The notes under the pieces were generated by a model. That model had not been told where the DNA came from. It saw only the letters and a program-made list of their open reading frames with translations, and ran no database searches. From contig NW_026262581.1 of the NCBI RefSeq assembly GCF_021869535.1, positions 48,732,001 through 48,796,000 on the forward strand: a DNA stretch of 64,000 nucleotides. The letters run 5' to 3'. Shown piece after piece: positions 3,844 to 63,130 of the stretch. The DNA comes from Mytilus californianus. Taxonomy: Eukaryota. The translations under genes were made by a program, and so were the position numbers. The first letter of the stretch is position 1, and each line of letters opens with the position of its first letter.

Positions 3844-4727
3844 TTAAAAACTGCAAATGGTATTCAACATTTGATTAGTCGGCCTTCTTCTACACATCAT
3901 GTAACAATTTACAGTTGCACAGTATTTGTTGGTTGGACAATCTCCATCAGCAAGACAGTCTTTTTTACAACCAACTTTTCCACTTACTACTGACTGGGAA
4001 ACGACCCCTGAACCACAAGTACGTACTGATCCACTACGTCTTAACAAAACTTTGTCTAATACATAGAGTCCACTTCTTCTAAGGTTGGTTGCGTCAAGAA
4101 TATAAGAACATGCATGACTATACATTCCATGGCTTCTACCTATAGTTTCCGAATGAGATTTGCTAGATAGGTCGACATTTCTAGCCAGACCAGACGAAAC
4201 AATTATCCTGCCAGAGGATAACTGACCATCAATACTTGAAACTCTGGTCAAACCAGATGATAAACTTCTAATTATTTCCCTTCTTGTAGAGTACGACAAT
4301 CCAGATGCACCAATTATACTTCAAGAAGAAATTTCGACGCAGTAGCTGCTACATCCGATGTGAATACATTTATGTCCTGAACGACATAATTTATCTCCTC
4401 CACACCCATAATGACAGTCAGATAAAGAACGTGAAATACCAGCTGATGAGTCTCTAATGATTTCAGATACCAATGTCCTGCCTCCAACAAAACACCCTGA
4501 CAATCTCGTACTGCCGGATGACCCATGTGTTATAAATTCATTGCCTATTTCATCCGATGTTCCAAATGCTCTTGATCCTGCTCGTCTATTTGCATCAATA
4601 ACATCTAGTACAGAAAGGGATCCGACACCACGACGCCCGTTTATATCTCTCCCAACTGTGTTTTCAACCTGTTGAATATTCTTTACTCTATGTATGTCTT
4701 TTGGATGCTTTTCCGTTGGTGAGTAGG
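3844..4727 (-). pseudogene. Pseudogene (copy 1) of the secreted Ser/Gly/Arg-rich, two six-Cys-module protein; only the large exon remains
   Basis: Acceptor TTACAG at 4728. A GGA>TGA nonsense change at 4321-4323 splits ORFs 4321..4503 and 3844..4299, which share a frame. There is an 18-nt deletion before Cys module 1, and a 3' deletion removes the GYTR* end and the AATAAA. No signal-peptide exon is found between 4728 and copy 2. Confidence 0.9.
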
Positions 4728-4944
4728 CTGTAAGATTAAATATCGAACCATTTTACAATTTTCACAAATCAAGCAATACAAAATACAATACAGGTGAACC
4801 ACTATCTGCATATAATTATCAGGATTTGTAGTTATTGCCAATTAGACAACGATTCACCTTACAATAAAGGATTGCGTAAACCATTGCAGGGACCTTACGG
4901 TTTCAGTCCAAACCAAAGGACATACGGCATAGTAAGCTATAAAT

Positions 4945-5223
4945 GCACCTGTCCTAATGAAGGAACCTGGTGTTTAGTGGTTGTCGTTTGTTGGTGCGGT
5001 TCATAAGTGTTTCTCTTTTTTTATATAGATAAGACCGTTGGTTTTTCTGTTTGAATGGTTTTACATTAGTTATTTTTGGGGCCCTTTATAGCTTGCTGTT
5101 CGATGTGAGCGAAGGCTTCGTGTTGAGGGCCGTACTTTGACCTATAATGGTTTACTTTTACAAATTGTGACTTGGATGGAGAGTTATCTCGTTGGCACTC
5201 GCGCCACATCTTCTTATATCTAT
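4945..5223 (+). repeat. Interspersed repeat (3' part of the high-copy family) where the intron of copy 1 breaks off
   Basis: Matches 43375-43660 and 47800-48005. Confidence 0.85.
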
Positions 5224-5477
5224 TGGTTGTTTTGTTTATATCTATTTCATTGTTTGACTCGTCTTTGATACTTTTTGAAGTAGTTTTACTTGTCATCTAT
5301 CGTATTTTTACGTTTGATTTGCCATGGATTTCAACTATTTTTCAAAAAAGTCATTTTTGGCACAATTGCAGTGCAGACCGTGGTTACATTATGAAAGTTT
5401 AACAGTGATCAATGTAGACAGCAAAAACGGTTAAAAACATCAATTTGTTATTTTGTAAGTGAGTGCTAAGCGAAAGA

Positions 5478-5700
5478 GGGACGAAAGATACCAGAGACAG
5501 TCAAACTCATAGATCGAAAACAAACTGACAACGCCATGGCCAAAAATAAAAAGGCAACCAGACAAATAATAGTACAGATGACACAACATAGAAAACTAAA
5601 GACTAAGCAACACGAACCCCACCAAAAACTGGGGGTGATCTCAGGTGCTCCGGAAGGGTAAGCAGATCCTGCTCCACATGTGGCACCCGTCGTGTGTCAT
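5478..5700. repeat. Interspersed repeat inserted in the 3' flank of copy 2 (…CACATGTGGCACCCGTCGTG family)
   Basis: Absent from the paralogous flank at ~31660-31700 (inverted) and ~44890. Diverged copies at ~26215-26440, 39170-39390 and 52700-52880. Confidence 0.75.
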
Positions 5701-6976
5701 GTTTCAAATTTATTTTTTAAAAGTGACCATTACCATTATTTCCGCCTTTTACAACTAACAAAGAGTGGGCAATGTGTTGGCTTTCAGATAATTCACGAAC
5801 TGAAAGTACATTCTACGTCATTTCAAGGAGAATATTATTCACCTAAGGACAACGATGAAAGAATGAGTGTTAAGACCTTTTCGAGTTTGTTGGTATTGAT
5901 TGGCCACGAATTTTAGTATGCAAAATACAAATTTCATTTCCGCTTGTTTAAAATATCTATTGTTGTTCTCCGTCATTACCCCAATTGTACAAAATTTCTG
6001 TTTTTTTTTATATCCATAACACCGTTTGATGATTGAATCTAATTTCATGTTCTACAGCAAAACAGAACCCGAAAAGTCTCCTTTACCATATATATATATA
6101 AGCACAGATAAACTGTGAAGTGTTATTTTTATTGTCATGCTATAAAAGACTAGCTGTATGTTTGCTTACAAATGTAATAATGAATACTCCATAAAAAAAG
6201 TTTTCGGGTGAGGTAAGGTATGTAGTTATCAAATATGGAACCTCGAAGAGAGCTTCTGGAACCCTTTTACCTGTCTAGCAAATATAAAAATAAGATGTGG
6301 CACGATTGCCAATGAGACAACTCTCCATCAGAGACGTTATGATGTAGAAGTTGACAACTATAGGTCACCGAAAGACCTTCAATAATGGTCAAAACCAATA
6401 CCGCATAGTAAGCTATAAATACTTCATATATCTTTAAATAGTAAGGACCGACCATAAAAGTGTACATACATCAATTTACAAATAAACATAATATTTCCTG
6501 AGGTAAACTATTTTTGCAATTAAAATGTATCCTTAAACTTCTTTCTATGACATTATTCTGGTTTCATGTATACCTATTTTTATAAACAAAGATTATTTGG
6601 CTAATGTCTTTGGCTGATTCTGAGTTTTTAATGGGAATCTTTAGTTGCCCGATTTGCCTAGCTTTCATCACGTTTCCAGAATAAAAACTTTTAGTAGCTA
6701 ATTCAGAATGCAAATCAATGTACAACTTGTCAAGGTATTGTGTTTTCTTGGGCGTAAGTGTTTATATCGGCTTTGTTTTACATTTTTCTTACAGTTTATG
6801 TTATGATTTTTTTATCACCAAACTTTTTTTCAATTGCTGTATTATTTTTATTATCTGTATTTATATCTTTGCGTTGTTTTAAATTTTCTGAGTAGGATTG
6901 CTTTGACGCCTAAATCATCAATATTTTGTATTGTAGAACGGAAAAGTTATACAATTACATAAATTGAATGCAACAT

Positions 6977-6982
6977 TTTATT
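6977..6982 (-). promoter_or_regulatory. Putative polyadenylation signal AATAAA of copy 2
   Basis: About 50 nt downstream of the stop. An AATAAA lies at a comparable position in copies 3 (35225-35230), 4 (46313-46318) and 5 (61455-61460), and is deleted in the pseudogene. Confidence 0.5.
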
Positions 6983-7034
6983 TTATAAAAAAAATAAAAT
7001 AGTGTTGAAAGTCTGGATTTCGGTGATATACTGT

Positions 7035-8246
7035 TCATCGTGTGTATCCTTGAGATGGCCTTCTTCGACAAATCATGTGACAATTAACAGTTGCACAGTA
7101 TTTGTTGGTTGGACAATCTCCATCAGCAAAACACTCTTTTTTGCAACCAATTGCTCCAGTTACTACTGACTGAGAAACGACCCCTGAACCAGAAGTACGT
7201 ACTGATCCACCACGTCTTAAAGAAACTGTGTCTAATACATCATGTCCACTTCGTCTAAGGTTGGTTGCGTCAAGAATATCAGAACCGGCATGACCAGACA
7301 TTCCACGACTTCTACCTATTGTTTCCAAATGAGCATTGCTAGATAGTTCCAAATCCCTAGCCAGACCAGATGAACCAATTCTCCTGCCAGAGGATAAATG
7401 ACCATCATTACTTGAAACTCTGGTCAAACCAGATGATAAACTTCTAATTATTTCCCTCTTTATAGAGTCAGACAATCCAGATGCACCAATTATACTTCCA
7501 GAAGAAATTTCGACGCAGTAGCTGCTACATCCATTGTGAATACATTTATGTCCTGAACGACACAATTTATCTCCTCCACACCCATAATGACAGTTTCTGA
7601 TACTGTCATCGTCAGATAAAGCACGTGACATACCAGCGGAGGAGCCTCTAATGATTTCAGTTACAGATGTCCTGCTTCCAACAGAACCCCCAGACAATCT
7701 TCTACTGTCGGATAACCCACGTGTTATAAATTCGTTTCCTATTCCACGAGATGTTCCAACTGCTCCTGATCCTGCTCGTCTATTTGCATCAATAACATCT
7801 AGTACTGAAAGAGATCCGCTACCACGACGCCCGTTTATAGCTCTTCCAGATGTGTTTTCGACATGTAAAATCTTCTTCACTCCATGAATGTCTAATGCAT
7901 GCTTTTCTGTTGGTGAGTAGGCTGTAAGATTAAACATAGAATAATTTTAACAATCTTTGCAGTACAAGTAATACAAAATACAATACAGGTGAACTACTAT
8001 CTTTATATCATTTTACTTTTACATTGTAATTCACAAAAAATATGTAAATGTTGGTAATAATATTTCTTATGTACTTTAGTTATATATATTTTTTTTAAAT
8101 TTTCTGCAGTAAGGTATTTATCTCAACATTGAAAATACTTTCGTTAAAACAGCCTATAAGTCTCGAAAAAAAAGTAACATTTTCTTACCGGCTACTATCA
8201 TTGTGGTCACTGCCATCGATAAGAAAATGGTCTGGAATCTCATCAT
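7035..8246 (-). CDS. Copy 2: secreted Ser/Gly/Arg-rich protein with two six-Cys WAP-like modules, 314 aa; join(8246..8189, 7921..7035)
   Basis: The 58-nt exon encodes signal-peptide-like MMRFQTIFLSMAVTTMIVA and ends G|GTAAG. The phase-1 acceptor TTACAG|CC gives A-YSPTEKH in frame with ORF 7035..7937. Intron 267 nt; same layout in all intact copies. Confidence 0.9.
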
Positions 8247-11200
8247 CTCTAAGAATTCTGAAATCAACAGGATAAACGTTGTTTTTCAGAAAATCATAAT
8301 TGACACATTAAATACGAAACAGTTAACACAATCTTTATATTCATATTTACATGTTTTACTATACACCTGCTAGAAACAATCTGCAGCGATATTTATACAT
8401 GTTGTGGGTATACAAAAATGACAGAATATCTTTATTCGAAGCCGAATTGTAGGATTTATTGTGCTTGCTTTCGAGCTACAAATTGTTCAAAATTGAAATA
8501 TTGTGTAAGGTTCACTAGTAGCAATATTTGAGTCTGAAACGGTCATTTTGGTCTGATCAAGTCTTAATCGACTGGATTTACTGCTAGAGAAAAACGTCAA
8601 GACTTTTTCAGACTTTCAGACGCTGTCACGATATACCGTGTTAAGTCCGTTCAGTCATGTCAAGATAAACAAGACAGATTGTTCTTGCATCCGATTAAGA
8701 CTTGATCAGACCATGTTCAGATCAAATCAGACTCAAGGTAAAAATGCTGTTTAGACTTTGTAAGATCGTGTTCAGTCGTGTTAAGATTTTAAATATTCGG
8801 ATGCAAAACGGGCGACACTTTCTCTGTGTTTATTAGGGGTTGTTTCCCTTTCATGAATAAAATCGGAAAAGAATGGAGGGTATTCTTTTGTGGTCTTTTA
8901 ATGTTATGTTGTATGTCTATTAATTAAATAACGTTTGCAAAGTTGCAATTCATTTTTTTCCGATGTTATTTCACGTAAACATTTAATTGGTTATATAAGA
9001 AAAGAATAATTGGTGTAACCGGAAAAGTGTGCAAGTCATAAAAACTTTGCAGTCGTGCTTTCTTGCATTAAGTAATTTAGTATTTATTCGTTCCGTCTGT
9101 AAAGATATAATGATTAGCAATAAATATCAAAAATGTTCTTAAACACATTTTCGTCTGTGATTTAAAATAATTGTTCTTACCCATATAAAATTAGTTAAGG
9201 AAAATATATTCTGAGTATCTTATTTACTTTATATTTTTCTAATTTTTGACAGATGACAGATGTTTGGTGAAAGTTATTTACATTTTAATATACGGATTAT
9301 CTGAGCATTCAACCGAAACGGACTGTCAAACACTATCTTAATAATTATAAATACCCGTGCAACGCTGTGACTGTTTTATCCATGGAAGTTATGTGAAATA
9401 TGTTGCCATGTTTTATCATATATAAGGATACACCGGATAAAATTATTACATTTACAAATTATACAACATTATTTCAAAATAAATGCAACAAGAATGCAAG
9501 CATATTTCAAAAATCTAGGTAACAGTTTATATTTAGTATAGGTACCTATAAAACCCGATTTTGATACTTCTCTGACCTATTTAAGCATCAATTCTTTTTT
9601 AGCAAGAACTAAAAAAAAAAGAATAAACTATATTATAGAAAAATATAACATAGAATAAGTTATGAAACAATTATTAAAAACAAAATGTACATAATTATAC
9701 ATCTAGTTTACGGTTTATATTTCTGTTTCGTAGCAGATTTGTTTTATATAGCACCCGTGTTACTTCTCATTTCAAAAACAAAATGTCAAAGTGGATTGGT
9801 GCCTAAATGGCTTCATGGTGCTTCAAAAAACATGTCCTTCTAATGATTAACATTTAATAAATCTTCATTTATCAAGGCTAATGAACAATTTCCCAAACTG
9901 TAAAAAGAAAATATGTAATAAAAAGTAATTATTTCAAGATTTGTCTCTTATATAATCAATCAATTGTCAACAAATTATATGTGACTTTTTGTCCTATCAA
10001 ATTTGTAACTTTCTGTCCTGTGACTTTCTTTCCGCTGTCCGTTAAAAAGGACCTCCCGCACTCAGGGAGAGAAAACTGCCGAGACTACCAATGCTAATTG
10101 TTAGATAGAATAATAAGTACATCAGTCATTCTCAATTTTATATTTATATAATCAAAATATGCATGCTGGTGCTTAAAAAAATCTGTTTCAAATGTTGAAT
10201 TAAAGGAATGCTCTGATTTCAAAACTTAAATCTTTCTCTGTTGCTTTCGATTGATATGATTTGCATATCATGTAATATTGTTCGCTGAACATTCAACTAT
10301 CTTAGCCAAGCATGTGCACTTCGTAATGCAATCTATAGAAAAAAAAATAAACCAGTTTTAAATTATGTACATTGTGCGAGTGTCGTGTTCGACTTATAAT
10401 CCTTTAATCTATAAAATAGTCATCAGTTACTATTAATACAATTATACTGTTGCATTTTTGACACTTTACTCAGAAAGATGTGAATATATTTTAATTTTCT
10501 TTCAACAAAATTTCCTACTTCAATTTGCTACTCGTCTACAAAAAAAAACACATTTATTATTTCATTTTTGCCATCGAACTTCCTGATAGATATGTTTTTT
10601 TTTTTTATCTATCTATCAGGTAAATATCAAAAATGAATCCAAAGTTTTTCAAGTACATTGACGGTTGTGAATTAAGGATTAGTTACTTTATGGAAAACTC
10701 ATTTACCTGAATGGTAATATTATCGTTAGTCTTTCTTTTAATAATTTGATAATTTTTCCTCTTTTGCAAATTATAGATAAAGAATAAAATGAAAATTTGT
10801 TTTCGATTGCATTCAAGCAGAGAGAAACATATTTTTTTTTGTTTTATTTCAAATAATTACGGAAGATTTTTAGTACGGATATAAAACAATTCTTAATCTT
10901 TTCCAATTTGCAAATATAATTCGGTGGGTTTTTTTTTTGCACATGGTTGGTGAAAATTGTATGATCTAACTTCTTTCAGAGGTCTGTTAAACCTTGAAAA
11001 TATGACAATTCCGTGAATCACACGTTGCTACATAGAATTCTTGCAAAATTCAGAAACTTGCAGTACGGTTATATTTTATATTTTCTCCGTTGAAAAAGAA
11101 AGTGTTAAAATAAGAAGGTGTTAACATGAAAGGGGAGGGTTGTTACACGACATGTTCTTCGCAATTTAATGTTGAACGAATAGAAGCTTTCTTACTTTTT

Positions 11201-13089
11201 TCAAATATCGAATACACAATCAAATCTCTAACTTATCAATTTTTGCAGTAATTGTTTTATTGACAGGTTTCTGGAGACATTTGATTGGACATCAGATTAA
11301 TGTAGGCGTGGGAATGTATCACTTTTATCCAATCAGCTGTCTTATAAAACAAACCTGTATGCGATGATGCTTGAACATTGTCGGCATAGTTTTTTTATAA
11401 AGAATTCTACATTAAAAGGATAAAAAAAAAGGATATTGTTGCCACTGTGGTCTTGTCATATAAAAATAGACAACGCTTATACCTATATATATATATATAT
11501 CTTCCACTGAGTATATTCATGGCTTGAGGGAAAGAAAGCAATAAATTAACTCGATAACCCTTTCAGTTTGTCATAAACTGATTGAAAAGTTGAGTTTTAC
11601 ATAAGAGCTAAATTCATCAAAGGCCAACTTAGTCTGAGGGAGCTGAAACCTTCATTTCTTAATATTTTTTTCTAAATTTATATACTGACAATTTACGAAA
11701 TGTTTGTTATATATTTTTGTTTGTAACATAAGTATCAAAATATATCAGCTATGAAGATTTGTATACCCTTAAATAAACTCATATTTTCCTCGGGCAATAT
11801 CCGCGGTAATAACAATTAATACATTAGTACAATAAAAACCATTATCAGGAAATCGGTATGAAAAGTGTTTGCAATTATTGAAATCAAGTAAAAAGAAGTG
11901 TATATATATATGTATCAGTCGGAGGTGCAATGGGGACCCTGAAGTCTGATTGTCACGCTGAAGTTAGATGGTCTGCGCCGAAGTGCAGTGGGCCGTCCGA
12001 TGGTGTGCGATGGTCTGTATGACCTGAGACTACTATAACACATATAGCAGTCTCAGATATGACGCGTGAAAGCTAGATTTAAATCTACAGATGTGCAGTA
12101 TATTTGTTTCAAATTCAGAACATACATTTGCATTCACTAGTGTTATTGTCTATGTATCTATTAGTTACAGTTGCGTACTAAATGAGAGATCGTCCTCTTT
12201 GATTTTCTGGATGTGGAAATAATTCTGCGTTAACATTTTTCTTTAACTTGTTCCTCTCATTGAGATCCTCGTTTACCGTTATATTATAATAAGAAGAGTC
12301 TGTGGACCCGTATGTGTTTAGGGAATGCATTTATTTCACGGTTCAAAGTCCTACATGCGTATATAGAATTTTACTCAGAACTCTGAAAGTTGATACCAGC
12401 ACATGTTATGCTTAAACCTCGTAATTCTAGATGTCAGATAACTTACTTGTGTTTGTGTTGGATTGCTGTCTGATTGACGCATACCCGCCATTTTAGTTTT
12501 TCATTTTTTGTTTAGGGGTGCATCCAGTTGCACCTTTTCATTCAAAATATATTAACGTGACGTTACCTTTAAAGATTCGTTACTTCAATATTTTAATTTT
12601 TTTAGGGAAACATCTTTTCGCATGTCGCACTTTGGGTATTTGTTAACCTTGTTCTCTTTGGCAAATATGGCCTTGAATTTCAATTTTGATATAAATATAA
12701 AAAAGCCACAAATTGATTACTAAATGGATATTTTTTAAAACCCCAAAAGCTAGGTAATACCATTCTTTTGATATAGGTTCCAAAATCAGCACGTTTTAAA
12801 GATTTTTTGAAAATACGATGGTTTTGTGCATTGTTCTAACCTAAAACATGAACAAATATAACTAAATAAACTAAAAATAAAATAAACAAATGTATTCTTG
12901 TCAGATCAAAATACCTTTAACATGCCAGTGCATTGATACAGATTATATTCTACTGAATTTTCTATATCGATAATATAACATTCGTTAGTATTACGTAATA
13001 AATATATAAATCCTGTGTCAGGTGAGAAGTGACAACGGGTGGTATGTATACTAAAATGTTTATCGTCTTCCCTTATACACGAGGGTGTG

Positions 13090-13612
13090 GATGGGGGTTT
13101 ACAGAATAGAGAATAGTTGACAAAAATATAAAGAATAGAGAAAATGACCAAACAAATAAAAAATGGAGAATGAAGAGGTACTAAAATATAAAAAATAAAG
13201 AATAATGGGCAAAAGTATACAGAATAGAGAAAAATGGCATAAAAATAATAAAAAACAGAAATAATGAATCCCTCTACAGACCCTCATAGTCTGACATTAA
13301 GCTTTAGGGCAATTATGGGCATACGATACAGTTTTGATCTCACGATGATTTTTTTTTACGAAAGTTTGCATTTAAGCTATTTCTAACCAAATCAATTTGA
13401 ATATGAAATAAAAAGTATATCATCATGTAAATAATAGAATACAGAAATAATAAACCCCTCTCCAGACCCTCATAATCTGCCGATGACATTAAGATTTAGG
13501 ACAATTATGGGCATACGATACAGTTTTGATCCCACGGTGATTTTTTTTAGGAAAGTTTGCATTCAAGCGATTTCTTACCCAATCAATTTGAATATGAAAT
13601 AAAAGCATATCT
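13090..13612. repeat. Short A-rich minisatellite followed by a ~180-bp imperfect tandem dimer
   Basis: AGAATAGAGAA units at 13100-13260. GGGCATACGATACAGTTTTGAT occurs at ~13317 and ~13510. Confidence 0.75.
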
Positions 13613-27854: not shown

Positions 27855-28380
27855 AATTGTCACATGAATTGTCGAAGAAGGCCGTCTAATGGATACACAC
27901 GATGAACATGTACAGCATACATGTATCACCAAAATCCAGACTTTCAACAATTATTTTTTTTTATATAAAATAAAATGTTGCATTCAATTTGTGTTATTGT
28001 ATGAATTTTTCGTACCACTATACAAAATATTCATTACTTAGGCGTTAAAGCAATCCTACTCAGAAAAATTAAAACAACACAAAGATATAAATACAGATAA
28101 TAAAAATAATACAACAATTGAAAAAAAAAGTTTGGTGATTTGTATTTATTCTATTTAATCTTAACACAAAAAAAATACATTAATTAAACAGTATTTATAC
28201 TGTCAAACAAGTCTTTGGCACTTTTTTATTCTGGATACGTGCTGAAAGCTAGGCAAATTGGACAACTAAAGCTTCCCTTTAGAAAAGCAGAATCAGCGAA
28301 AGGCAATAGCCAAATAATCTTTGTTTATAAACATAAGTATACATGAAACCAGAATAATATCATAGAATGAAGTTTAAGGA
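27855..28380 (+). pseudogene. Inverted 3' fragment of the gene family: last 16 codons (NCHMNCRRRPSNGYTR*) plus 3' UTR/flank
   Basis: 27855-27905 translates to the family C-terminus. 27906-28380 is the reverse complement of the type-B 3' flank (cf. 6528-7034). Absent from the paralogous block at ~39625-40215. Confidence 0.9.
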
Positions 28381-31150
28381 TATATTGGTTATTGGCGGTA
28401 ACTCGAAATATTTTCGTTACATTTCAATCGATCTTCAAATTACGAATAAAACCAACACAAAAAGGGTGAGTATCAGATACTCACCTACTATATCAAACCA
28501 GATGATAAGAAAAAAACAGTATAACAAAAATATCGAACTCAAAGATAAATTCAGGAAAGGGAAGTCTATAAAACTTTCAAAATCAAAAGTTATCAAATAA
28601 CGGAACGAGTAAAAAGCAACTGTCGTATTTTTAACTTAATACTGGTTTTATAGCTAGCTTAACGCCTGTTTAAAGTTAGGCACTAAGAGATTTTAAGAAA
28701 TATTTTAAACTGGAATTTGTAAACACTATAATTCATTTCAGGCCGAATTACGGTTTATCTTGGATAAATTGTTATTCAAATGGTTCCAATTAATACATCT
28801 TTGATTCAAAGGTTGATGTAATTGGGAACAGTAGTAAACTAAGAAAAGGTACTCAGAACAAACAGGTTGAAAAGTCATGAACTGGTCTCTATTTGTTATC
28901 CTTATTTTCCCATACACATTCCCCTTAACTTATGTGCTGAGTTAACTATACGTCGAATCTTATTTACCAAAATAATAAGTCATGTGATTTGTTTGACCAT
29001 TCATAGCATTGGGAACAGATATTAAACGGTCTAAGAAGAAATTTATAGATAGCAGCTTGCTCAAGTTTGCGTTTGAAAAGACATGGCTTAAAAGAAAGCG
29101 GGGTTTGAGTTTGAAATATACTACACTGTGTAAATTGTGCACAGACCAGCATAGTGATTTTGCACACCAGACGCGTGTTTCGTTTGTAAGAGAATCATTA
29201 GTATCGTTCAAACATTTGGCCTAACTCAATACGAAGTAAAAGAGCTTTATATACCAAAGATATAGAATGATTGTGCCAAATACGGTTAAGACAATCTATA
29301 CCCTCTAGTAGAAAGCCCTAAGTGCTTCAAATATTTGGCTGATAATACCGTCGGGGAAGAAAATTCCACCAGCAGTGGCATCGACCCAGTGATTGTAAAA
29401 ACTCATCAAAGATACAAAGATTGTAAATTTGCAAGACGTGCATTTTGTTTGCAAAGACTCACGTTCCCATCAGGCATTTCGACAACAAAAATTCAGAGAA
29501 GGCAACTAATTATTATTATATAAAAAGTACTCAGAAATGGCAAAGTATTATGAATAATAAATAAAATATGATTTCGAACTAATGAAAATTATTGCGAGGT
29601 TTTTATCAATGCGAATAATGCCACTGACTGACTCAATAATATAAACTCGAACTCTTATATCTGTTACACAGATATGTTTGAAGATATTCCTAAAATTACA
29701 ATAATTAATTTTGCATTTTGTCCGTATTTAAAATATTGCAATAACAAATGCAAGCAGTTATTTCTGAATTTACAGTATTCTATGGGTGTTTTCAACCCTG
29801 TACAATACCAAATGTATGTTTGTGTGTGGCCTTACAAACTTTTTATTTTTTCCATGTATATGTATGACACAGGTGTAGTGCGTACGGAATCGGTATATAG
29901 TTTTGATTTTACTACCATTTAAGTTTTAATGCTAAAAGCTACTTCCGGTAAAGTATATGTCCCCTAGTAGATAACAAACATTCAAGCGCTTGTTATTCAA
30001 ACCATGATTTCCTTGATAGAGGACATGACTGAACCAAAGGGTTAATAAACTTAATGATAAGATTTGAGTAAGTTCTTCGAATTTTTTTACAGACTCAATC
30101 ATGACTTGATTGACATCGTCCTGAAGATCATAGATGAGTTCGCGTCCTTGTTCATAGCTTGTCACCAAAAACTATGATAAATGGAAGTTTACTCTAAAAA
30201 CAAAGTTGTGTACTACTTAAGGAGCAGGAGATGCTCACCCTTTATTGGGCATTTGTGTTCCTCCTAAAACTATCTATGTTAAATTGTTGCCGCTCTGTGC
30301 AATTTCTTGTTTATAAAGTGTAATCTTAAATTTTGTTAGTGAACATTGTTTGTTTTGTTTGTATCCTATTCATTGTTTGCCTCGGCATGTCTCTATTTCT
30401 TCGTCTTTGGTACTTTTTGAAGTAGTTTTACTTGTCATCTATCGTTTATTTGAGTGTTAAGACCCTTTCGAGTTTCTTGGTATTTGTTGGCCACGAATTT
30501 AAGTATGCAAAATACAAATTTCATTTCCGCTTGTTTAAAATATGTATTGTTGTTCTTCGTCATTACCCCAATTGAACAAAATTTCTTTTTTCGATATCTA
30601 TAAAACCGTTTGATGATTTTTTTCTTCAATATCTCATCATTAAATCTGATTTCATGTTCTACAGCGAAATAGAACCAGATAAGTCTATTTTACCATATAA
30701 ATATAGAAGCACAGATAAACTGGGAAGTGTTATTTTTATTGTCATGCTATAAAAGCTGTATGTTTGCTTACAAATGTAATATTGATACTCTGAAATTTCC
30801 ATAAAAAAAAAGTTTTCGGGTGAGGTAAGGTAGTTATCAAATATGGAACCTCGAAGAGGGCTTCTGGAACCCTTTTACCTGTCTATCAAATATAAAAATA
30901 AGAGTTTGTGGCATGATTGCCAATGAGACAACTCTCCATCAGAGAAGTAATGATGTAGAAGTTGACAACTATAGGTCAGCGAACGACCTTCAACAATTAT
31001 CAAAACCCATACCACAAAGTAAGCTATAAATACTTCATATGTATCGTTAAATTTTAATGACCGACCATATAAATGTACAAATATCAAGTAACAAAATAAA
31101 CATGATATTTCTTGAGGTAAACTATTTTCGCAATTAAAATATTTCCTTAA

Positions 31151-31425: not shown

Positions 31426-31557
31426 TTAAACGTTATTCTATGACATTATTCTGGTTTCATGTATACCTATTTTTATAAACAAATATTATTTGGCTTCACT
31501 CGAAAAAGTCTTAACACTCAACCTTTCTCCGTTGTCCTTAGGTGAATGATATTCTCC

Positions 31558-35282: not shown

Positions 35283-36637
35283 TCATCGTGTGTATCCATT
35301 AGACGGCCTTCTTCGACAAATCATGTGACAATTAACAGTTGCACAGTATTTGTTCGTTGGACAATCTCCATCACGATGACACTCTTTTTTGCAACCAATT
35401 GCTCCACTTACTACTGATTGAGAAACGACCCTTGAACCAGAAGTACGTACTGATCCACCACGTCTTAAAGAAACTGTGTCTAATACATCAAGTCCACTTC
35501 GTCTCAGGTTGGTTGCGTCAAGAATATCAGAACCTGCATGACCAGAAATTCCACGGCTTCTACCTATTGTTTCCAAATGAGAATTGCTAGATAGGTCAAA
35601 ATTTTTAGCCAGACCAGATGAACCAATTCTACTGCCAGATGATAAATGACCATCATTTCTTGAAACTCTATTCAAGTCAGATGATAAACTTCTAAATATT
35701 TCCCTTCTGATAGAGTCCGACAAACCAGATGCACCAATTATACTTCCAGAAGAAATTTCGACGCAGTAACTGCTACAGCCATTGTGAACACATTTATGTC
35801 CTGAACGACATAATTTATCTCCTCCACACCCATAATGACAATTATTGATACTGTCATCGTCAGATAAAGCACGTGAAATACCAGCTGAGGAGCCTCTAAT
35901 GATTTCAGATACAGATGTCCTGCTTCCAACAGAACCCCCCGACAATCTCGTACTGCCCGATGACCCACGTGTTATAAATTCATTGCCTATTCCATGAGAT
36001 GTTCCAAATGCTCTTGATCCTGTTCGTCTATTTGCATCAATTACATCCAATGCAGAAAGGGACCTGCCACCACGACGCCCGTTTAAATCTCTTCCAAGTG
36101 TGTTTTCGACTTGTAAAACCTTCTTCACTCCATGTATATCTAATGCATGCTTTTCCGTTGGTGTGTAGGCTGTAAAATTAAATATCGAACAATTCTTATT
36201 ATCCTCACAAATCAAGTAATACAAAATACATTACAGATGAACTACTATCTACATACAGGATATGTATTGCCAATAAGACAATTATTCACTATAAACCAAA
36301 GGATGATGTAAACAACTACAGGCCGTACGGTGTCAGTCCCAATCAAAGGACATACCGCATAGTAAGCTTTAAATGACTCCACATGACCAAATGTGAAACA
36401 AATCAAAACAAAACAATCAATCGTTTCAAAATTTTACATTATAATTTACAAAAATATGTAGATATTGTAATATTCTTTCTTATATACTTTAATTATATAT
36501 ATATTTTTTGGAATTCCTTCAGTAAGGTATTTAGATTTTATCTCAACATGGAAAATAGCAAATCGAATATTTTTCTTACCGGCTACTATCATTATGGTCA
36601 CTGCCACCGAAAAGAATATGGTCTGGAATCTCATCAT
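35283..36637 (-). CDS. Copy 3: secreted Ser/Gly/Arg-rich two six-Cys-module protein, 314 aa; join(36637..36580, 36169..35283)
   Basis: Signal exon MMRFQTIFFSVAVTIMIVA ending G|GTAAG; acceptor TTACAG; 410-nt intron; all 12 Cys intact. Confidence 0.9.
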
Positions 36638-44430: not shown

Positions 44431-46378
44431 ACACAATGTAAATTAACATTAATGTATGTTTTAGTGTGGCCTCAGAAACTTTTGATTTTTTTCAATGTAC
44501 ATATATGACACAGATGTAGTGCAAATGAAATTGGTATATTGTTTTGATTGTACTACCACTTAAATTTTAAAGCGAAAAGATGCTTCAGGTAAAGAATTGT
44601 TTGTCTCTCTGTGCAATTTCTTGTTTATTTTATTTTGTTTTTGTTTTTGAACATTGTTTGTTTTGTTTGTATCCATTTCATTGATTCCCTCGGCATGTCT
44701 GTATTTCTTCGTTTTTGATACCTTTTCCTGTCGTCTATCGTGTTGTTAAGTTTGATTGGCCGTGGATGTAAACAAAAGTCCTTCTTGACACATTTACGGT
44801 GCAGACCGTGGTTACATTCTGAAAAGTTTAAAATTGATCAATGTAGACAACAACAATAGTTAAACACATCAATTTGTTATGTTTTAAGTGAGTGCTAAGT
44901 GAAAAGTCGATGTTTTAAATTAAATTTTTAAAGCAATTATTAACCATTATTTCTGTCTTTGACTACCAAACAAAGATCGGGTAATGTGTTGGCTTTCATA
45001 GTTGCACGAACTTACAGTATATTCTACGTAATTTCAAGAAGAATATCATTCACCTAAGGACAACGATGAAAGGTTGAGTGTTAAGACCTTTTTGAGTTTG
45101 TTGGTATTGATTGGCCACAAATTTAAGTATGCAAAATTGTCATTTCCGCTTGTTTAAAATATCTATTGTTGTTCTCAATTGAACTAAAATTCTTTTTTTT
45201 GATATCCATAAAACCATTTGATGATTGAGTTTTTTTTTATCAAATATAGAATAAGCACACAATCTTTACCATACTCATTGATATAAATCGTTTTTTTTTT
45301 CTATAGTTCTACATTTTATCTGATTTCATGTTCTATAGCGAAATAGAACAAGAACAGTCTCCTATACTATATCAATATATAAGCACAGATAAACAGTGAA
45401 GTGTTATTTTTATTGTCATGCTATAAAAGACTAGCTGTATGTTTGCTTACAAATGTAGTAATGGATACTCTGAAATTTCCATAAAAACGTTTTCGGATGA
45501 GGTAAGGTAGTAATCAAATATGGAACATCGAAGAAGGTTTACAAAACCCTCTTAGCTGTCTATTAGATATAAAAAAAAAATTAAGATGTGGCATGATTGC
45601 CAATGAGACAAGTCACCACCAGAGACGTAATGATGTGAAAGTTGACAACTATAGGTCAGCAAATGACCTTCAACAATGATTAATACCCATACCGCATAGT
45701 AAGCTATGAATACTTCATATATCTTTAAATATTAAGGACCGACCATATAAATGTTCATATATAAATTTACAAGCAAACATAATATTTCCTGAGGTAAACT
45801 ATTTTTGCTATTAAAATATATCCTTAAACTTCTTTCCATGACATTATTGTGGTTTCATGTATACCTATTTTAATAAACGAAGATTTTTTGGATAATGTCA
45901 TTCATTGATTCTGTTTTCTTATAGTCAATCTTTAGTTGTTCGATTTGCCTAGCTGTCAGCACGTATCCAGATTTAAAAAAATCCAAAGACTTCTTTGAAA
46001 ATATAAATAAGTAGTTATTTTAGAATGCAAATAAATGTAGAACTTTCAAAGGCATTGTGTTTGCTTTGGCGAATATAGTTTATAGATTTTGTTCTACAAT
46101 TTTTCTAATTGTTTATGGTATGTATGTATGTGTTTGTGTTAAGAGTAAATGTGTAAATGGTATTAATTGAAATCACCAAACTCTTTTTCAATTAATATCT
46201 TATTTTTCTTATCTGTATTAATTTTGAGTAGGATTGCTTTGACGCTTAAATAATCAATATTTTGTATTGTAGTATAGAAAATTTATACAATAACACAAAC
46301 TGAATGCAACATTTTATTTTGTAAAAAAATAATAAATAAGTGTTCAACGTCTGGATTTTGGTGATATTCTGTACATGT

Positions 46379-48218
46379 TCATCGTGTGTATCCATTAGAC
46401 GGCCTTCTTCGACAAATCATGTGACAATTAACAGTTGCACAGTATTTGTTCGTTGGACAATCTCCATCACGATGGCACTCTTTTTTGCAACCAATTGATC
46501 CACTTACTACTGACTGAGAAACGACCCCTGAACCAGAAGTACGTACTGATCCACCACGTCTTAAGGAAACTGTGTCTAATACATCAAGTCTACTTCGTCT
46601 AAGGTTGGTTGCGTCAAGAATATCAGAACCTGCATGACCAGATATTCCACGACTTCTACCTATTGTTTCCAAATGAGCTTTGCTAGATAGGCCCAAATCC
46701 CTGGCCAGACCAGATGAACCAATTCTGCTGCCAGAGGATAAATGACCATCATTACTCGAAACTCTGGTCAAGCCAGATGACAAACTTCTAATTATTTCCC
46801 TCCTTATAGAGTCGGACAATCCAGATGCACCAATTATACTTCCAGAAGAAATTTCGACGCAGTAGCTGCTACAACCATTGTGAATACATTTATGTCCTGA
46901 ACGACATAATTTATCTCCTCCACACCCATAATGACAGTTACTGATAATGTCATCGCCAGATAAAGCACGTGAAATACCAGCTGAGGAGCCTCTAATAATT
47001 TCAGTTACAGATGTCCTGCCTCCAATAGAACCCCCAGAAAATCCTCTACTAGCTGATGACCCGCGTGATAAAAAGTCATTGCCTATTCCATGAGATGTTC
47101 CAACTGCTCTTGATCCTGCTCGTCTGTTTGCATCAATTACATCCAGTACAGAAAGGGATCCAGCACCACTACGCCCGTTTATGTCTCTCCCAACTGTGTT
47201 TTCGACCTGTAAAATCTTCTTCACTCCATGTTTGTCTAATGCATGCTTTTCTGTTGGTGAATAGGCTGTAAGGATAAATATCGAACTATTTTTACAATAT
47301 TCACAAATCAAGTAATACAAAATACAATACAGGTGAATTACTATCTGCATATGAATATCAGGATATATGTAGTAATTGCAAATAAGACAACTATTCACCA
47401 TACACCAAAGGATGGTGTAAACTTGTAAAACCTTCTTCACTCCATTTATATCTAATGCATGCTTTTCAATGGGTGCATAGACTGTAAAATTAAATATCTC
47501 ACAATTTATATAATCTTTATCAATAAAGTAATACCATAAACAATACAGGTTAACTAATATTTACATATTTATATAAGGATACTTGGTACAATTGTCAAAA
47601 AACAATTATCCACCATAGACCAAAAGTCGAGGTTGTAAAGAGTTGCAGATATCGTTCGGTTTCAGCACTGAGCAAAGCCCATACCTTATCGTAAGCTATT
47701 ACAAGACCCCTATGATAAAATTCAAAACAATTCAAAACACAAAACCATTCGTTTCAAACTTTTTTCTTCTAATTTACAAAAAATATGCAGATTCTCATTT
47801 TTTTATATAGATCAGACTGTTGGTTTTCCTGTTAGAATGGTTTTACACTAGTCATTTTGGGGGCCCTTTAAAGCTTGCTGTTTGAAGTGAGCCTAGGCTC
47901 CGTGTTGAAGGCCGTACTTTTACCTATAATGGTTTACTTTTACAAATTTAGACTTGGATGGAGAGTTGTCTCATTGGCACTCATATCACATCTTCTTATA
48001 TCTAGATGTTGGTACTATGCTTTCTTATAATTATGTACGAAAGTTATCTATGTTTAAGAACATTTCTGCGGTAAGATATTTAGATTTTATATACACTTTG
48101 AAAACACTTTTGTCAAACAGCTTATATATATCGAAATGTCAAATTAAATAATTTGCTTACCAGTTACTGTCATTGTGGTCAATGCCATCAAAAAGAATAT
48201 GGTCTGGAACCTCATCAT
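46379..48218 (-). CDS. Copy 4: secreted Ser/Gly/Arg-rich two six-Cys-module protein, 314 aa; join(48218..48161, 47265..46379)
   Basis: Signal exon MMRFQTIFFLMALTTMTVT ending G|GTAAG; acceptor TTACAG at 47266; 895-nt intron containing a repeat and a duplicated acceptor. Confidence 0.88.
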
Positions 48219-50546: not shown

Positions 50547-50615
50547 CTTTGTTTCAAGCGATTGGAATTATTTCTAATGAATAGTATTTTAATGCTTACA
50601 AAATGTCCTTTTATA
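50547..50615 (-). promoter_or_regulatory. Putative core promoter and non-coding first exon of copy 4 (TATAAAA 50615-50609; start ~50585; donor AAG|GTAAG at 50546)
   Basis: Same spacing as copies 2 and 3. Confidence 0.6.
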
Positions 50616-59615: not shown

Positions 59616-59927
59616 GGCGTAATACCACCATTGATTTCCCCTATTAGTCGCACTTTTCAAAAAAATGGTGCAGAATTTATCTTTGTTTCAAATAAAAAAT
59701 ACTTGGCATGAGTAAAGTTTTATCCTGTCTAGTACTATAGACAAAATTTCTCATAACATTTCATTGCATATAAGAAAAAAACCATCACTAGAAGTTAATC
59801 AGTCAAAATTTCACCCTTTTTTTGTCTTGTGTGCAAGCTTTAGTAACCATGTAACCTCAAGTTTCCATGCATCGCAGTTTTCGTATGAAACTGGATGTGA
59901 CGTACTATGAGTTTGTGGTATTACACC
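59616..59927. mobile_element. 312-bp MITE with TTAA flanks and GG…CC ends (Kolobok-like)
   Basis: TIR GGYGTAATACCAC. TTAA at 59612-59615 and 59928-59931. Lies in a segment absent from the copy-1 flank (~2745). Confidence 0.7.
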
Positions 59928-61514
59928 TTAAACTTTATACAAAGTAGCAATGAATGCTTGATATTGCAGAATTTAACAGAAAAAGCAATCATAATTTTGA
60001 ACTAGTGGCTTTAATCCTTAAAAGTACGACGTCTCAACTCACGAAAGTTTCAATCGATCGTGTACCACTTAAGGTAAATAAAATACTTACCTTTTTAAGA
60101 GCTAAAGAGGTCTTCCGAAATAAGTTGGATGAATATTTTTTATGGGATTTTTGTTTTTTAAACATTGTTTGTGTTGTTGTCTAAAGTTATTTTCTTTGCA
60201 ACCGTGTAGTATGTTTTTCTTCGTACTTTGTACCCTTTAAAGTAAATTAACCTATCATTTGGAGTGCTGTAAAATTTAACTTGCTGTGGACATGAAATTG
60301 TTTTCAAAAAGGTCATTCCTGACACAACTGCGGTGCTTTCGACATAACTATTGTATGTTTATGTAGTTAACTTAAAGAAACAGTGGTTACATCATGAATA
60401 GTAAAATAGTGTTAGATGAAGACAACATTAACGGTTAAACACTTTATCTTCTTTGTTGAGTGGTTGCTATGATAAAGGTTGGTGTTTGCAATTAATTTTT
60501 TAAATAGAACCATTACCTTAAATGTATGTATTTACTTGCTTTATGTTAAGCCAAGATTATGCTGATGTGACAAAAATGCACGTATTGAATTACAAAATGT
60601 CAAGTCAAATAACATTCACCTAAAGACAGAAAACGCTTGAGATTTAAGACATTTTCGAGTTTGTTGGTATTGATGAACCACCAGTTTATGTATGCAACAA
60701 CATGCCAATTTCCTTTGAGATTGTACAAAATATGTGTAGATGTGATTTCAGTCTTTTTCCCCCATAACTCCCATCAGCAAAAACACTTTTGTAATATCTC
60801 AAAACCCGTTTGATTGATAAGTTTGTTTTAAAGCGTATATATCCTTAGTCAACTGGTTTATGTCAATGCTAAAGCATCAAACCTGGTTACATGCTCTTCA
60901 GAGAAATAGAACCAGAACGAGTATTGCATGTCGTAGAGCAGATAGATGTTTCGGGCGCAGTAAAATTGTAAAGTGTCACTGTCATTGGTATGCTATTAAA
61001 GACCGAATCTGTATATTTCCTTAACATATAAGAACATTTCTCAAATAAGACCTGTTATCCTTTAAGTGATGTTTTATTACAATACCCTGTGTTTTACAAG
61101 ACTCAATTGTTGGTAAAGCATTGATATATTTCGATCTCTTTTAAATTGTATTAATGTGAAATTGAACACTTTTTGACAAGCAAAATGTAGTCACAGAAAA
61201 TTTTAACATTTGTGTGCTTTGAGTTTTTTTCTTAACATTTTCCAGTGTAATCGATCGTCATTTTTCAACACTCAATCATATCCTTAGATATTTTAACTTT
61301 TAAAGACTCTTGAGCATGTTTTACTGTGGTTATTGGTAGCTGTCTCATTGATGTCTATAATATGTCTGTTTTATTTTCATTTTTTAAATACATCTTAAAT
61401 GGATGAAAAATACAACACATATTCAAAAACTGCGAGCTGTGTTCAACATTTAATTTTATTCAAAAATAATACTGTGTGTGTCAAATGTGGATTTCGGTGA
61501 TATCCTGTACATGC

Positions 61515-63130
61515 TCATCGTGTGTATCCATTAGACGGCCTTCTTCGACAAATCATGTGACAATTAACAGTTGCGCAGTATTTGTTCGTTGAACAATCTC
61601 TATCAGCAAGACAGTCTTTTTTACAACCAATTTTCCCATTTACTACTGACTGGGAAACGACCCCTGAACCAGAAGTACGTACTGATCCACCACGTCTCAA
61701 AGAAACTGTATCTAATACATCAAGTCCACTTCTTCTAAGGTTGGTTGCGTCAAGAAAATCAGAACCTGCTTGACCAGACATTCCACGACTTCTACTTATT
61801 GTTTCCAAATGAGCATTGCTAGATAGTTCTAAATTTCTAGCCAGACCAGATGAAACAATTCTGCTGCCAGAGGATAAATGGCCATCATTACTCGAAACTC
61901 TGGTCACGCCAGATGATAAACTTCTAACTATTTCACTTCTTATAGAGTCCGACAATCCAGATGCACCAATTATACTTCCAGAAGAAATTTCGACACAGTA
62001 GCTGCTACAACCATTGTGAATACATTTATGTCCTGAACGACATAATTTATCTCCTCCACACCCATAATAACAGTTACTGATACTGTCATCGTCAGATAAA
62101 GCACGTGACATACCGGCTGAGGAGCCTCTAATGATTTCAGATACAGATGCCCTGCTTCCAATAGAACCCCCAGAAAATCCTCTACTAGCTGATGACCCGC
62201 GTGATAAAAAGCCATTGCCTGTTCCATGAGATGTTCCAACTGCTCTTGATCCTGTTCGTCTATTTGCATCAATTACATCCAGTACAGAAAGAGATCCAAC
62301 ACCACTACGTCCGTTTATGTCTCTTCCAACTGTGTTTTCGACCTGTAAAATCTTCTTCACTCCATGTTTGTCTAATGCATGCTTTTCTGTTGGTGAATAG
62401 GCTGTAATAATAAATATCGAATCATTTTTACAAAATTCACAAATCAAGTTATACAAAATACAAAACATGTGAACTACTGTCTACATATGGATTTCAGGAT
62501 ATATGTAGTTATTGCAAATAAGACAACTATTCACCATACCAGATGTAAACTTGTAAAACCTTCTGCACTCCATGTAGATCTAATGCATGCTTTTCCGTGG
62601 GTGCATAGACTGTAAAATTAAATATCTGACAATTGATATCATCTTTACTAATCAAGTAATATCATAAACAATACAGGTTAACTAATATTTATATATTTAT
62701 ATAAGGATACTTGTATTATTGCCGATAAAACAACTATCCACCATAGACCAAATGGCGAGGTTATCAACAGTTGCAGGTACAGTTCGGTTTCAGCACTGAG
62801 CAAAGCCCATACCTTATCGTAAGCTATTAAAAGACCCCATGATAAGATTAGAAACAATTCAAAACACAAAACCATTCGTTTCAAACTTTTTCATTATAAT
62901 TTACAAAAATATGCAGATGTTGGTAATATGCCTTCTTGTGATTATGTACGAAAGTTGATTATGTTTAAGAACATTTCTGCGGTAAGATATTTAGATTTTA
63001 TCTACACATTGAAAAAAACTTTTGTTAAACAGCTTATATATATCGAAATGGCCAATAAAATAACTTTCTTACCGGTTACTGTCATTGTGGTCAATGCCGT
63101 CAAAAAGAATATGGTCTGGAACCTCATCAT
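61515..63130 (-). CDS. Copy 5: secreted Ser/Gly/Arg-rich two six-Cys-module protein, 314 aa; join(63130..63073, 62401..61515)
   Basis: Signal exon MMRFQTIFFLTALTTMTVT ending G|GTAAG; acceptor TTACAG at 62402; 671-nt intron. The non-coding first exon is predicted beyond the window end. Confidence 0.88.

Follow-up and report, generated by a model that had tools for sequence, protein, structure and literature searches.

The 64,000-nucleotide window analysed here, which contains no N, is part of one ~470-kb cluster of 35-plus genes in Mytilus californianus, whose products form a Mytilus-restricted, functional and tandemly amplified family that descends from proteins with WAP (whey-acidic-protein) domains. 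This uncharacterised family is real and is expressed, and it is a member of a known domain superfamily; it is not a new kind of system, since its genes are already predicted in public annotations. At this locus a WAP domain was reduced to a three-disulfide knot and then multiplied within proteins, to between one and ten modules, after which the genes themselves expanded to dozens of near-identical copies, with purifying selection and very high expression. Underwater adhesion, biomineralisation and invertebrate immunity are all studied with mussels as models, and WAP-type proteins recur in the transcriptomes and proteomes of all three fields without a defined role. The window genes are tentatively read, with a likelihood a little short of even, as functional amplified WAP-derived genes whose product would be an abundant secreted matrix or coating component and not a canonical serine-protease inhibitor.

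The four intact copies of the window share a 58-nt signal exon (19 codons + 1 nt), a phase-1 intron and an 887-nt large exon, with donors reading G/gtaag and acceptors ...ttacag/CC (slashes mark exon edges), so that a GCC codon (Ala) is split by the intron and 294 further in-frame codons lead to the TGA stop; each spliced product has 19 + 295 = 314 aa. The original prediction of four intact minus-strand paralogues, each joining a 19-aa signal exon to 295 further residues, is confirmed by the ORFs, the splice sites and RefSeq protein P0001 (314 aa), whose junction, ...MTVTA/YSPTEKH, is that predicted for copy 3. Counting also bears out that 12 Cys are kept in all four copies and that Ser, Gly and Arg make up 122 of the 295 residues of copy 2 (122, 122, 126 and 124 in copies 1-4). 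The features of the window are, by position:

3874..4881, minus strand, broken fifth copy, large-exon homologue only, 86% identical to the copy 3 exon
7035..7921, minus strand, copy 1 large exon, CDS including the TGA stop, acceptor ttacag/CC, 294 in-frame codons plus the split Ala codon, 12 Cys
7922-8188, minus strand, copy 1 intron, 267 nt
8189..8246, minus strand, copy 1 signal exon, MMRFQTIFLSMAVTTMIVA + 1 nt, donor G/gtaag
27855..28386, plus strand, inverted relic comprising the last ~50 nt of a large exon and the 3' flank (blastn)
35283..36169, minus strand, copy 2 large exon, minus-strand ORF
36170-36579, minus strand, copy 2 intron, 410 nt
36580..36637, minus strand, copy 2 signal exon, 58 nt, ATG to donor
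46301..46378, minus strand, copy 3 3' UTR, AATAAA at 46318-46313, poly(A) site at 46301
46379..47265, minus strand, copy 3 large exon, LOC127720415, 100% identical to RefSeq P0001
46412-46489, minus strand, copy 3 module 2, from the Cys positions
46859-46936, minus strand, copy 3 module 1, from the Cys positions
47266-48160, minus strand, copy 3 intron, 895 nt
48161..48218, minus strand, copy 3 signal exon, 58 nt, ATG to donor, RefSeq junction
61515..62401, minus strand, copy 4 large exon, minus-strand ORF
62402-63072, minus strand, copy 4 intron, 671 nt
63073..63130, minus strand, copy 4 signal exon, sequence read directly

Whole-protein analyses were made with the database protein P0001, and the window was queried exon by exon. 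An additional 5' UTR exon, suggested by a 'tttcag' 11 nt before the ATG, was considered and rejected as unnecessary, since isoform X1 of M. galloprovincialis (P0074) reads straight through the equivalent sequence. Proximal upstream conservation of the genes is limited to ~130-200 nt, no conserved TATA box was found upstream of them, and a Pfam search of the remaining window ORFs gave no match. A 207-bp dispersed repeat lies at 47798-48004, inside the copy 3 intron.

The broken fifth copy, which is what lies at the start coordinate 3844 given originally, carries a premature TGA (4323-4321) right after module 1, an in-frame 18-nt deletion and a divergent C-terminal end, and a signal exon was not found upstream of it. 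Further upstream in the genome, at distances of 35.6 and 82.7 kb, are two more copies of the same broken type, with one TGA each. The inverted relic is 98% identical to the large exon over 51 nt and 78-83% identical in its flank, in the opposite orientation (blastn).

Intact genes of the two-module kind number 24 in the cluster, which also contains the three copies of this broken type, ~10 genes with three modules and one founder-like gene that encodes 731 aa and has a full WAP domain. The copy-number amplification claimed originally is confirmed far beyond its earlier extent. The accompanying claim that the copies differ by no indels stands for the four in the window, in which the 887-nt exon shows 0 gap events in 6/6 pairs, but not for the 24 intact genomic copies, whose large exons span 283-299 codons. 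Introns (4-10 gap events between window copies) and flanks (2-11) do differ by indels, in line with the insertions described originally. Purifying selection on the window genes, also predicted, is supported by Nei-Gojobori dN/dS values of 0.31-0.43 at dS 0.12-0.20 among the four window copies and by an overall dN/dS of 0.38 among the 24 intact genomic copies, with 0.09 in module 1 and 0.34-0.42 in the other regions.

Expression is seen in sequencing run X1, inferred from its coverage pattern to be an RNA run, in which coverage is confined to 46301-47260 (the copy 3 large exon and 3' UTR) and is zero in the intron. Depth over the copy 3 large exon is 400-18,535, and X1 contigs end at 46301 with an unaligned poly-T that represents the poly(A) end, 12 nt after AATAAA. 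No reads over the splice junction were seen in X1, in which contigs end at the border of the exon and depth over the signal-exon bin is zero; the copy 3 junction, a predicted one, rests on the RefSeq model and the conserved splice sites. High expression of the family, as originally proposed, is thus supported in at least one RNA-like run. Essentially no reads fall on the large exon in the RNA run X21, and this silence against the depth of X1 points to tissue-restricted expression.

These data also bear on the very improbable explanation that the locus consists mostly of non-functional copies or assembly-inflated duplicates of a single gene, which several copies that are 99% identical as protein and a higher-order ~35-47 kb unit present three times in the cluster might suggest. 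The three units are unequal in length and gene content, 24/27 full-length copies retain the open frame, all 12 Cys and the splice sites, dN/dS is well below 1, and the X1 contigs hold many paralogue-specific variants, all of which argue against it.

Both modules contain six Cys with the spacing C-x3-C-x5-C-x5-C-x4-C-x3-C, for which the predicted pairing is Cys1-Cys5, Cys2-Cys4 and Cys3-Cys6. The canonical WAP four-disulfide core has eight Cys, paired C1-C6, C2-C7, C3-C5 and C4-C8; compared with it, the modules have no C1 segment and retain a single Cys of the CC doublet, and with six Cys in every module they were filed as WAP-derived and not as four-disulfide cores. The Pfam WAP profile (PF00095, cut-off 20.8 bits) scores 22.6, 23.9 and 24.5 bits in copies 1-3 and 17.3 bits, under the cut-off, in copy 4, with the match confined to positions 11-40 of the 41 in the profile. 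AlphaFold modelled the whole protein too poorly for a fold search (pLDDT 39.8), and the module was therefore modelled alone (pLDDT 76, hairpin E22-27/E30-35). The top Foldseek matches of this model in the PDB were omwaprin (prob 0.99, TM 0.60), elafin and SLPI, and the top ranks of an exhaustive structural aligner were omwaprin (Z 4.0), SLPI (3.8), elafin (3.6) and nawaprin (2.7). The central beta-hairpin knot of the WAP fold is thus present in the module model, with match statistics that are weak in absolute terms (Foldseek E 0.1-2, Z 2.7-4.0) because the module has only ~35 residues. The top ESM Atlas clusters for the module are WAP, while an ESM Atlas feature search gave no usable match with P0001 and WAP leads only, with scores < 0.9, with P0078, a paralogue with up to ten modules.

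The derivation is also supported within the cluster itself, in which a complete WAP domain with 8 Cys is present in three members (P0078, P0085 and P0086). This domain matches PF00095 over positions 1-41/41 with E 1e-13 to 9e-27 and stands N-terminal to the same linkers and modules. Alignment of the module profile with these complete domains by hhalign gave a probability of 94.7% (E 5.7e-8), and the knots are demonstrably WAP domains that have lost the C1 segment at the N-terminus and have only one of the two Cys of the CC doublet. The original prediction had described disulfide modules in a protein with no named gene; the six-Cys knots stand and are now assignable as WAP-derived by Pfam, the fold searches and hhalign, while the genes already exist as RefSeq models (P0001 being "uncharacterized protein LOC127720415") and the orthologues are named 'WAP domain-containing protein' in UniProt.

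The top PDB sequence match of the module profile was the DPY module (PDB 1OIG) of Drosophila Dumpy, a beads-on-a-string extracellular matrix protein; by hmmsearch (E 2.3e-4) it covers 20 residues with the pattern C-x2-D-x-D-C-P-x4-C-x5-C. DPY is a 21-residue two-disulfide module between EGF repeats, which the mussel family lacks. The match spans 4/6 Cys, both the fold searches and the full WAP of the family point to WAP, and WAP accounts better for the module as a whole.

Of the known systems compared, the snake-venom waprins omwaprin (PDB 3NGG) and nawaprin (PDB 1UDK) are the best structure and sequence matches to the module and the full WAP, for which they are the closest PDB sequences (E 3.3e-5 and 1.6e-3). 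They share with the mussel modules the C2-x3-C3 loop, the D-x-D/S-C-P motif, the central beta-hairpin and a cationic character, but each consists of one ~50-aa domain in which eight Cys form four disulfides and a C1 segment is present at the N-terminus, whereas the mussel proteins, from a mollusc and not a venom, have two six-Cys modules within ~240 residues of Ser/Gly/Arg linker. Elafin/trappin and SLPI share the fold class of the modules, and trappins also join a WAP knot to a repetitive anchoring region (cementoin), a resemblance reached as an ESM Atlas lead only; the mussel linker is unrelated to cementoin.

WAP homology, and the role proposed in papers for foot- and shell-associated WAP proteins, would also suit a canonical WAP-type serine-protease inhibitor that shields secreted material or tissue from proteolysis. 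This role is improbable in view of the C2-C3 region. The inhibitory loop of elafin and SLPI is exposed and spans C2 and an 8-residue C2-C3 spacer that carries P1-P1' (PDB 1FLE, 2Z7F), whereas the spacer in all modules has 3 residues (KKE or HYG), giving a short loop of waprin type from which the inhibitory segment is missing. The C1 segment and one disulfide (C1-C6) are also gone, and the closest structures are waprins, which are not known to inhibit proteases.

The protein as a whole combines two compact three-disulfide knots with long Ser/Gly/Arg-rich spacers, and the product has a computed mass of ~30.5 kDa, pI of ~9.7 and net charge of +16. Its secretion, claimed originally, is supported as a prediction by the signal-peptide-like exon, which has an n/h/c layout with V at -3 and A at -1. 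The only ordered parts of the whole-protein AlphaFold model are the signal helix and the two hairpin modules, and the spacers are predicted to be disordered, with predicted disorder over ~85% of the protein. Tyr is scarce, with 5-6 per copy in 294 residues (1.7%), and the family is, as had been stated, unlike the DOPA-rich foot proteins mfp-1 to mfp-6, which are high in Tyr/DOPA.

Short motifs are conserved along the spacers, hLDxxxxxRR three times among them, and the dipeptide RR is found at residues 67, 174, 242, 255 and 305. Such sites raise the alternative of a polyprotein precursor, cleaved at conserved dibasic positions (NRR/, LRR/ and RR in the tail) to release the knots and LD-motif peptides, and are joined by SVLDVIDANRR, among the best conserved stretches of the family, and by the distant relative P0087, in which SVLD...RR is repeated many times. 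Little probability attaches to this alternative, as visual inspection of the family sequences revealed no amidation signals of the Gly-dibasic type, and conservation and constraint (dN/dS ~0.4) extend to the linker that separates the sites.

The strong positive charge is compatible with a defence role as much as with a matrix role. A soluble cationic host-defence effector of waprin or crustin type is the main alternative, possible though unlikely, in which the knots and Arg-rich chain would bind and disrupt microbial surfaces and amplification would supply mucosal or humoral immunity. It is favoured by the waprins, which are antibacterial or venom proteins, being nearest to the canonical WAP among all PDB sequences and nearest among solved structures, and by the waprin C2-x3-C3 spacing of the modules. 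Type II crustins also pair a Gly-rich region with a C-terminal WAP domain, and share a signal peptide and cationic character with the mussel family, but have one canonical 8-Cys WAP and a 4-Cys region, are ~10-20 kDa, occur in arthropods, and showed no detected homology to the family outside the WAP core. Mussel antimicrobial-peptide families often form tandem arrays, as here, but typically diversify, whereas module 1 is near invariant and the paralogues are homogeneous. Against defence are also the size and predicted disorder of the product, unlike compact antimicrobial peptides, and the paralogues with up to ten modules, which resemble matrix proteins.

The matrix or coating role is preferred. 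Purifying selection would keep the cluster copies alike, high copy number would serve dosage, and a restricted tissue would make the protein in very large amounts; outside the cell it may act as a beads-on-a-string matrix or coating of the byssus, the periostracum or shell, or a mucus layer, with the knots serving as stable nodes for binding or cross-linking, joined by the cationic spacers as flexible tethers. The more specific proposal of a putative new major secreted protein, a structural or protective component of byssus, periostracum or shell, maybe processed at RR sites and evolved by stepwise module loss from a ten-module WAP protein, is itself unlikely. The abalone nacre proteins lustrin A and perlwapin, which are similar in architecture, are mollusc extracellular matrix proteins built from WAP domains (cited in PMC5854119). 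In lustrin A a long domain rich in Gly and Ser is combined with a basic domain and, at the C-terminus, a WAP-like one, together with other Cys- and Pro-rich domains that the mussel family lacks, whereas perlwapin lacks long linkers and contains three WAP domains of the canonical 8-Cys type; unlike these abalone proteins, the family is confined to mussels. Published work repeatedly reports WAP-bearing proteins from the shell matrix of molluscs and, in mussels, among genes that are specific to the foot or strongly expressed there (PMC5854119, PMC6641155, PMC5549309, PMC7971044), and searches of the literature library found only such general WAP foot and shell statements and no paper that names the mussel WAP-derived family.

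Once the tissue and material are identified, one of the larger lineage-specific secretory clusters of Mytilus would gain a function, and the knot would offer a natural minimal WAP scaffold for protein engineering. An exhaustive HMMER search recovered only 19 representative relatives, and all the named ones are from Mytilus. Distant relatives are present in the Logan/ENA samples SRR29152238 and ERZ6864376.

The window, which contains no N, holds five homologous minus-strand stretches of an open exon of approximately 890 nt, four of which are intact:

Copy 1, minus strand: signal exon 8246-8189, large exon 7921-7035 including the stop codon
Copy 2, minus strand: signal exon 36637-36580, large exon 36169-35283 including the stop codon
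Copy 3, minus strand: signal exon 48218-48161, large exon 47265-46379 including the stop codon
Copy 4, minus strand: signal exon 63130-63073, large exon 62401-61515 including the stop codon
Broken copy, minus strand: 3874-4881, with an 18-nt in-frame deletion, a TGA at 4323-4321 directly past module 1 (the first six-Cys knot), a divergent end and no signal exon upstream

The signal exon (58 nt coding) is conserved upstream of each intact large exon, running from ATGATGAG... to the donor G/gtaag and encoding MMRFQTIFF(L/S)xA(L/V)T(T/I)M(T/I)V(T/A) plus one base. The large-exon acceptor, ...ttacag/CC, supplies CC, so that the split codon is GCC (Ala); 294 codons and a TGA follow, giving 19 + 295 = 314 residues per intact copy. 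In a word-index protein search the copy-3 exon matched a 314-aa RefSeq protein, P0001 ('uncharacterized protein LOC127720415 [Mytilus californianus]'), with 100% identity, and the N-terminus of this protein, MMRFQTIFFLMALTTMTVTA-YSPTEKH, is the spliced junction given in the original prediction. Exons and splice sites fully bear out the four two-exon paralogues proposed there and splicing is as predicted, with a copy-3 junction that equals the P0001 gene model; the junction was not seen in reads of the runs compared over 45900-51890. The predicted signal exon marks the product as secreted.

All four intact copies encode 12 Cys, and their large exons align without gaps in all six pairings, versus 2-11 gap events per pair in introns and flanks, as had been claimed for these copies. 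Ser, Gly and Arg together number 122, 122, 126 and 124 in copies 1-4, the recount for copy 2 reproducing the earlier figure of 122, and Tyr is indeed scarce (5-6 per copy). Pairwise dN/dS among the four copies is 0.31-0.43 (dS 0.12-0.20), which bears out the proposed purifying selection. Intron lengths are 267, 410, 895 and 671 nt in copies 1-4. In copies 3 and 4, a tandem duplication of approximately 200 bp (47421-47624 and 62549-62752), comprising the intron 3' end and the opening 60 nt of the large exon at 76-78% identity, makes a decoy acceptor. Behind it lies an open 60-nt phase-1/phase-1 segment, VYAPTEKHALDLHGVQKVLQ, with a weak GTTTAC donor at its end. The segment could be a cassette exon; no isoform with it was seen among database proteins.

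The amplification is larger than the original prediction realised. A genome-wide six-frame search (window, C1:48,732,001-48,796,000) placed all matches in one cluster of approximately 470 kb at 48.525-48.995 Mb, containing 24 full-length, open two-module large exons, three copies of the broken type with one TGA each, several fragments, approximately ten three-module genes (48.876-48.975 Mb) and, at its far end, the gene for P0078, a 731-aa M. californianus protein labelled 'hornerin-like'. The 20 intact copies outside the window were all fetched; every one keeps the 12 Cys, 18 have a confirmed splice acceptor, and a pattern search within 1.6 kb found the signal exon for 17. Their large exons span 283-299 codons, so indels do occur, located in the linkers. 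Across the 24 copies dN/dS is 0.38 for the whole exon, 0.09 for module 1, 0.34 for the C-terminal module (the second knot) and 0.41-0.42 for the linkers. These are real genes, massively amplified and under purifying selection. In the gene tree the copies fall into clades, and the chromosomal order of broken copy, clade C, clade B and clade A occurs three times with a spacing of 35-47 kb, indicating segmental duplication of a multigene unit in which the broken copy was by then already disabled. Identity between paralogues reaches 99% in some cases, a sign of recent gene conversion or segmental duplication, or possibly of assembly inflation. The C-terminal module has two alternative loops, KKECHRDGDC and KKDCLADRDC (for example 46412-46489 and 61548-61625), and the scattering of both versions over different clades suggests that paralogues have exchanged sequence in mosaic fashion (gene conversion).

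Transcription was assessed by comparing the coded sequencing runs X1, X18, X19 and X21 over 45900-51890. X1 is a small M. californianus run whose RNA status was guessed; among the runs containing the sequence, the index gave none on record as RNA. Its contigs cover only 46301-47260 (copy-3 3' UTR and large exon), with a depth of 18,535 at the 3' end that drops to 400 towards the 5' end and with nothing on the intron or upstream region except a dispersed repeat. Two X1 contigs stop at 46301 with unaligned poly-T, at a minus-strand CA dinucleotide 12 nt past an AATAAA at 46318-46313. This is the pattern of a polyadenylated minus-strand mRNA. The contigs differ from copy 3 by many variants, and their signal therefore represents the two-module subfamily, not one copy. 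X18 and X19 cover every bin and are DNA-like, and X21, a true RNA-seq run of M. californianus, has essentially no reads on the copy-3 exon. Transcription of the family is thus strong in one setting and silent in another, with the RNA status of X1 judged from its coverage.

The claim that the family cannot be assigned is superseded: the genes are WAP-derived, and their products are already annotated as uncharacterised or WAP-domain proteins. Every family module has the spacing C-x3-C-x5-C-x5-C-x4-C-x3-C, and its Pfam WAP match is weak (17-24.5 bits against a cut-off of 20.8 bits, profile positions 11-40 of 41 only). Against PDB sequences, a profile of 33 modules best matched the Dumpy DPY module (24 residues), with omwaprin, nawaprin and elafin at marginal E-values. 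The AlphaFold model of the C-terminal module (pLDDT 76) contains a beta-hairpin, and Foldseek of this model against the PDB returned omwaprin at the top (probability 0.99, TM 0.60, rmsd 0.9 Å over 28 residues), then elafin and SLPI; exhaustive alignment to 48,161 chains ranked omwaprin, SLPI, elafin and nawaprin 1-4 at Z 4.0-2.7. Its ESM Atlas neighbours are WAP clusters. These structure searches agree with one another, with statistics that are weak in absolute terms because the module is tiny.

The derivation follows from the family's own full WAP domains. A family-profile HMMER search of all 1.84 billion cluster representatives returned 19 proteins at E ≤ 1e-3, the named ones all Mytilus and the others from Logan, ENA or JGI assemblies. 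P0078, P0085 (unnamed, Logan, 314 aa) and P0086 (unnamed, Mytilus edulis, 665 aa) each have a signal peptide and then a complete eight-Cys WAP domain (Pfam match 1-41 of 41, E 1e-13 to 9e-27), followed in P0078 and P0085 by Ser/Gly linkers, six-Cys modules and the C-terminal module with its CRR...GY tail, as in the family. Profile-profile alignment of the six-Cys modules to these domains (94.7% probability, E 5.7e-8) spans C2 to C8, a deletion taking out one Cys of the CC doublet; the modules are WAP domains minus the C1 segment and one doublet Cys, and so have exactly one disulfide fewer, assuming the canonical C1-C6 pairing. Such pared-down three-disulfide modules are not unique to mussels, since P0083 and P0098, a 494-aa protein from ENA, JGI/IMG and Logan environmental assemblies, has nine with identical six-Cys spacing (P0083 Pfam WAP score 59 bits). 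Among all PDB sequences, those nearest to the P0078 WAP domain are the snake waprins (omwaprin, E 3.3e-5; nawaprin, 1.6e-3), which share the three-residue C2-C3 spacer of this domain and the modules. In elafin and SLPI, by contrast, this spacer has eight residues and bears the protease-binding loop; a canonical protease inhibitor is therefore unlikely, the inhibitory loop being missing.

Whole-protein analyses were made on P0001 as in the database (17.7% Ser, 15% Gly, 10.2% Arg). The AlphaFold model is ordered only in the signal helix and two hairpins, with pLDDT below 50 at residues 13-138 and 159-279. Among 33 family members the linkers carry the near-invariant motifs SLSVLDVIDANRR, RIGSSGLAR, HLETIG, SGHxGSDILDA and LDVLDTVSxRRxGS, and hLDxxxxxRR occurs three times in P0001. 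SSGSxIGxSGL lies directly after module 1 and again 37 residues on; P0028 and other three-module paralogues have their extra module at this repeat point, so the window's two-module genes look like the three-module form minus one. The mature protein (30.5 kDa, pI 9.7, net charge +16) has no N-glycosylation sequon. Its charge and closest structures would suit a waprin- or crustin-like cationic antimicrobial, the main rival reading, but the size of the protein and the lack of diversification among copies speak against it. The near-identical copies, near-invariant module 1, extreme transcript depth and tissue restriction, together with approximately 85% predicted disorder and paralogues of up to ten modules, suggest an extracellular product that a specialised secretory tissue makes in abundance, its dosage raised by gene amplification. 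Such a product may be a beads-on-a-string matrix or coating protein, a reading we favour tentatively; a precursor processed at dibasic sites is also conceivable.

Named relatives all come from Mytilus (californianus, coruscus, galloprovincialis, edulis, trossulus) and are labelled 'uncharacterized', 'unnamed protein product' or, in UniProt, 'WAP domain-containing protein'. No paper found by full-text literature search mentions the family. Uncharacterised WAP proteins are described in general terms as specific to the mussel foot or strongly expressed there (PMC5549309, PMC7971044), and as occurring in bivalve shell matrices beside low-complexity proteins rich in Ser and Gly (PMC5854119, PMC6641155).

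The window also holds mobile elements. A 15.9-kb non-autonomous CACTA-type DNA transposon (8513-24371; termini CACTAG...CTAGTG, 120-nt terminal inverted repeats 88% complementary, 3-bp target duplication GTT) contains no ORF of at least 110 aa and has its insertion point 267 nt upstream of the start codon of copy 1. Copy 1 retains the proximal stretch of approximately 200 nt that is conserved across the copies, which makes the element promoter-proximal, not demonstrably intronic. Upstream of copy 3, a 325-aa ORF on the opposite strand (48617-49594, plus strand) lies in an insertion of approximately 1.1 kb (48741-49845) absent from copy 4; Pfam gave no match for the ORF, and its C-terminal part presumably resembles the tail end of reverse-transcriptase ORFs from non-LTR retrotransposons. 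A dispersed MITE-like repeat of approximately 207 bp (47798-48004; also 31962-32167, 33366-33571, 43452-43659, 43965-44182 and 21323-21412) explains much of the extra length of the copy-3 intron, reaches a summed depth of 2-3 million in DNA-like runs, and is the sole part of 45900-51890 with X21 reads.
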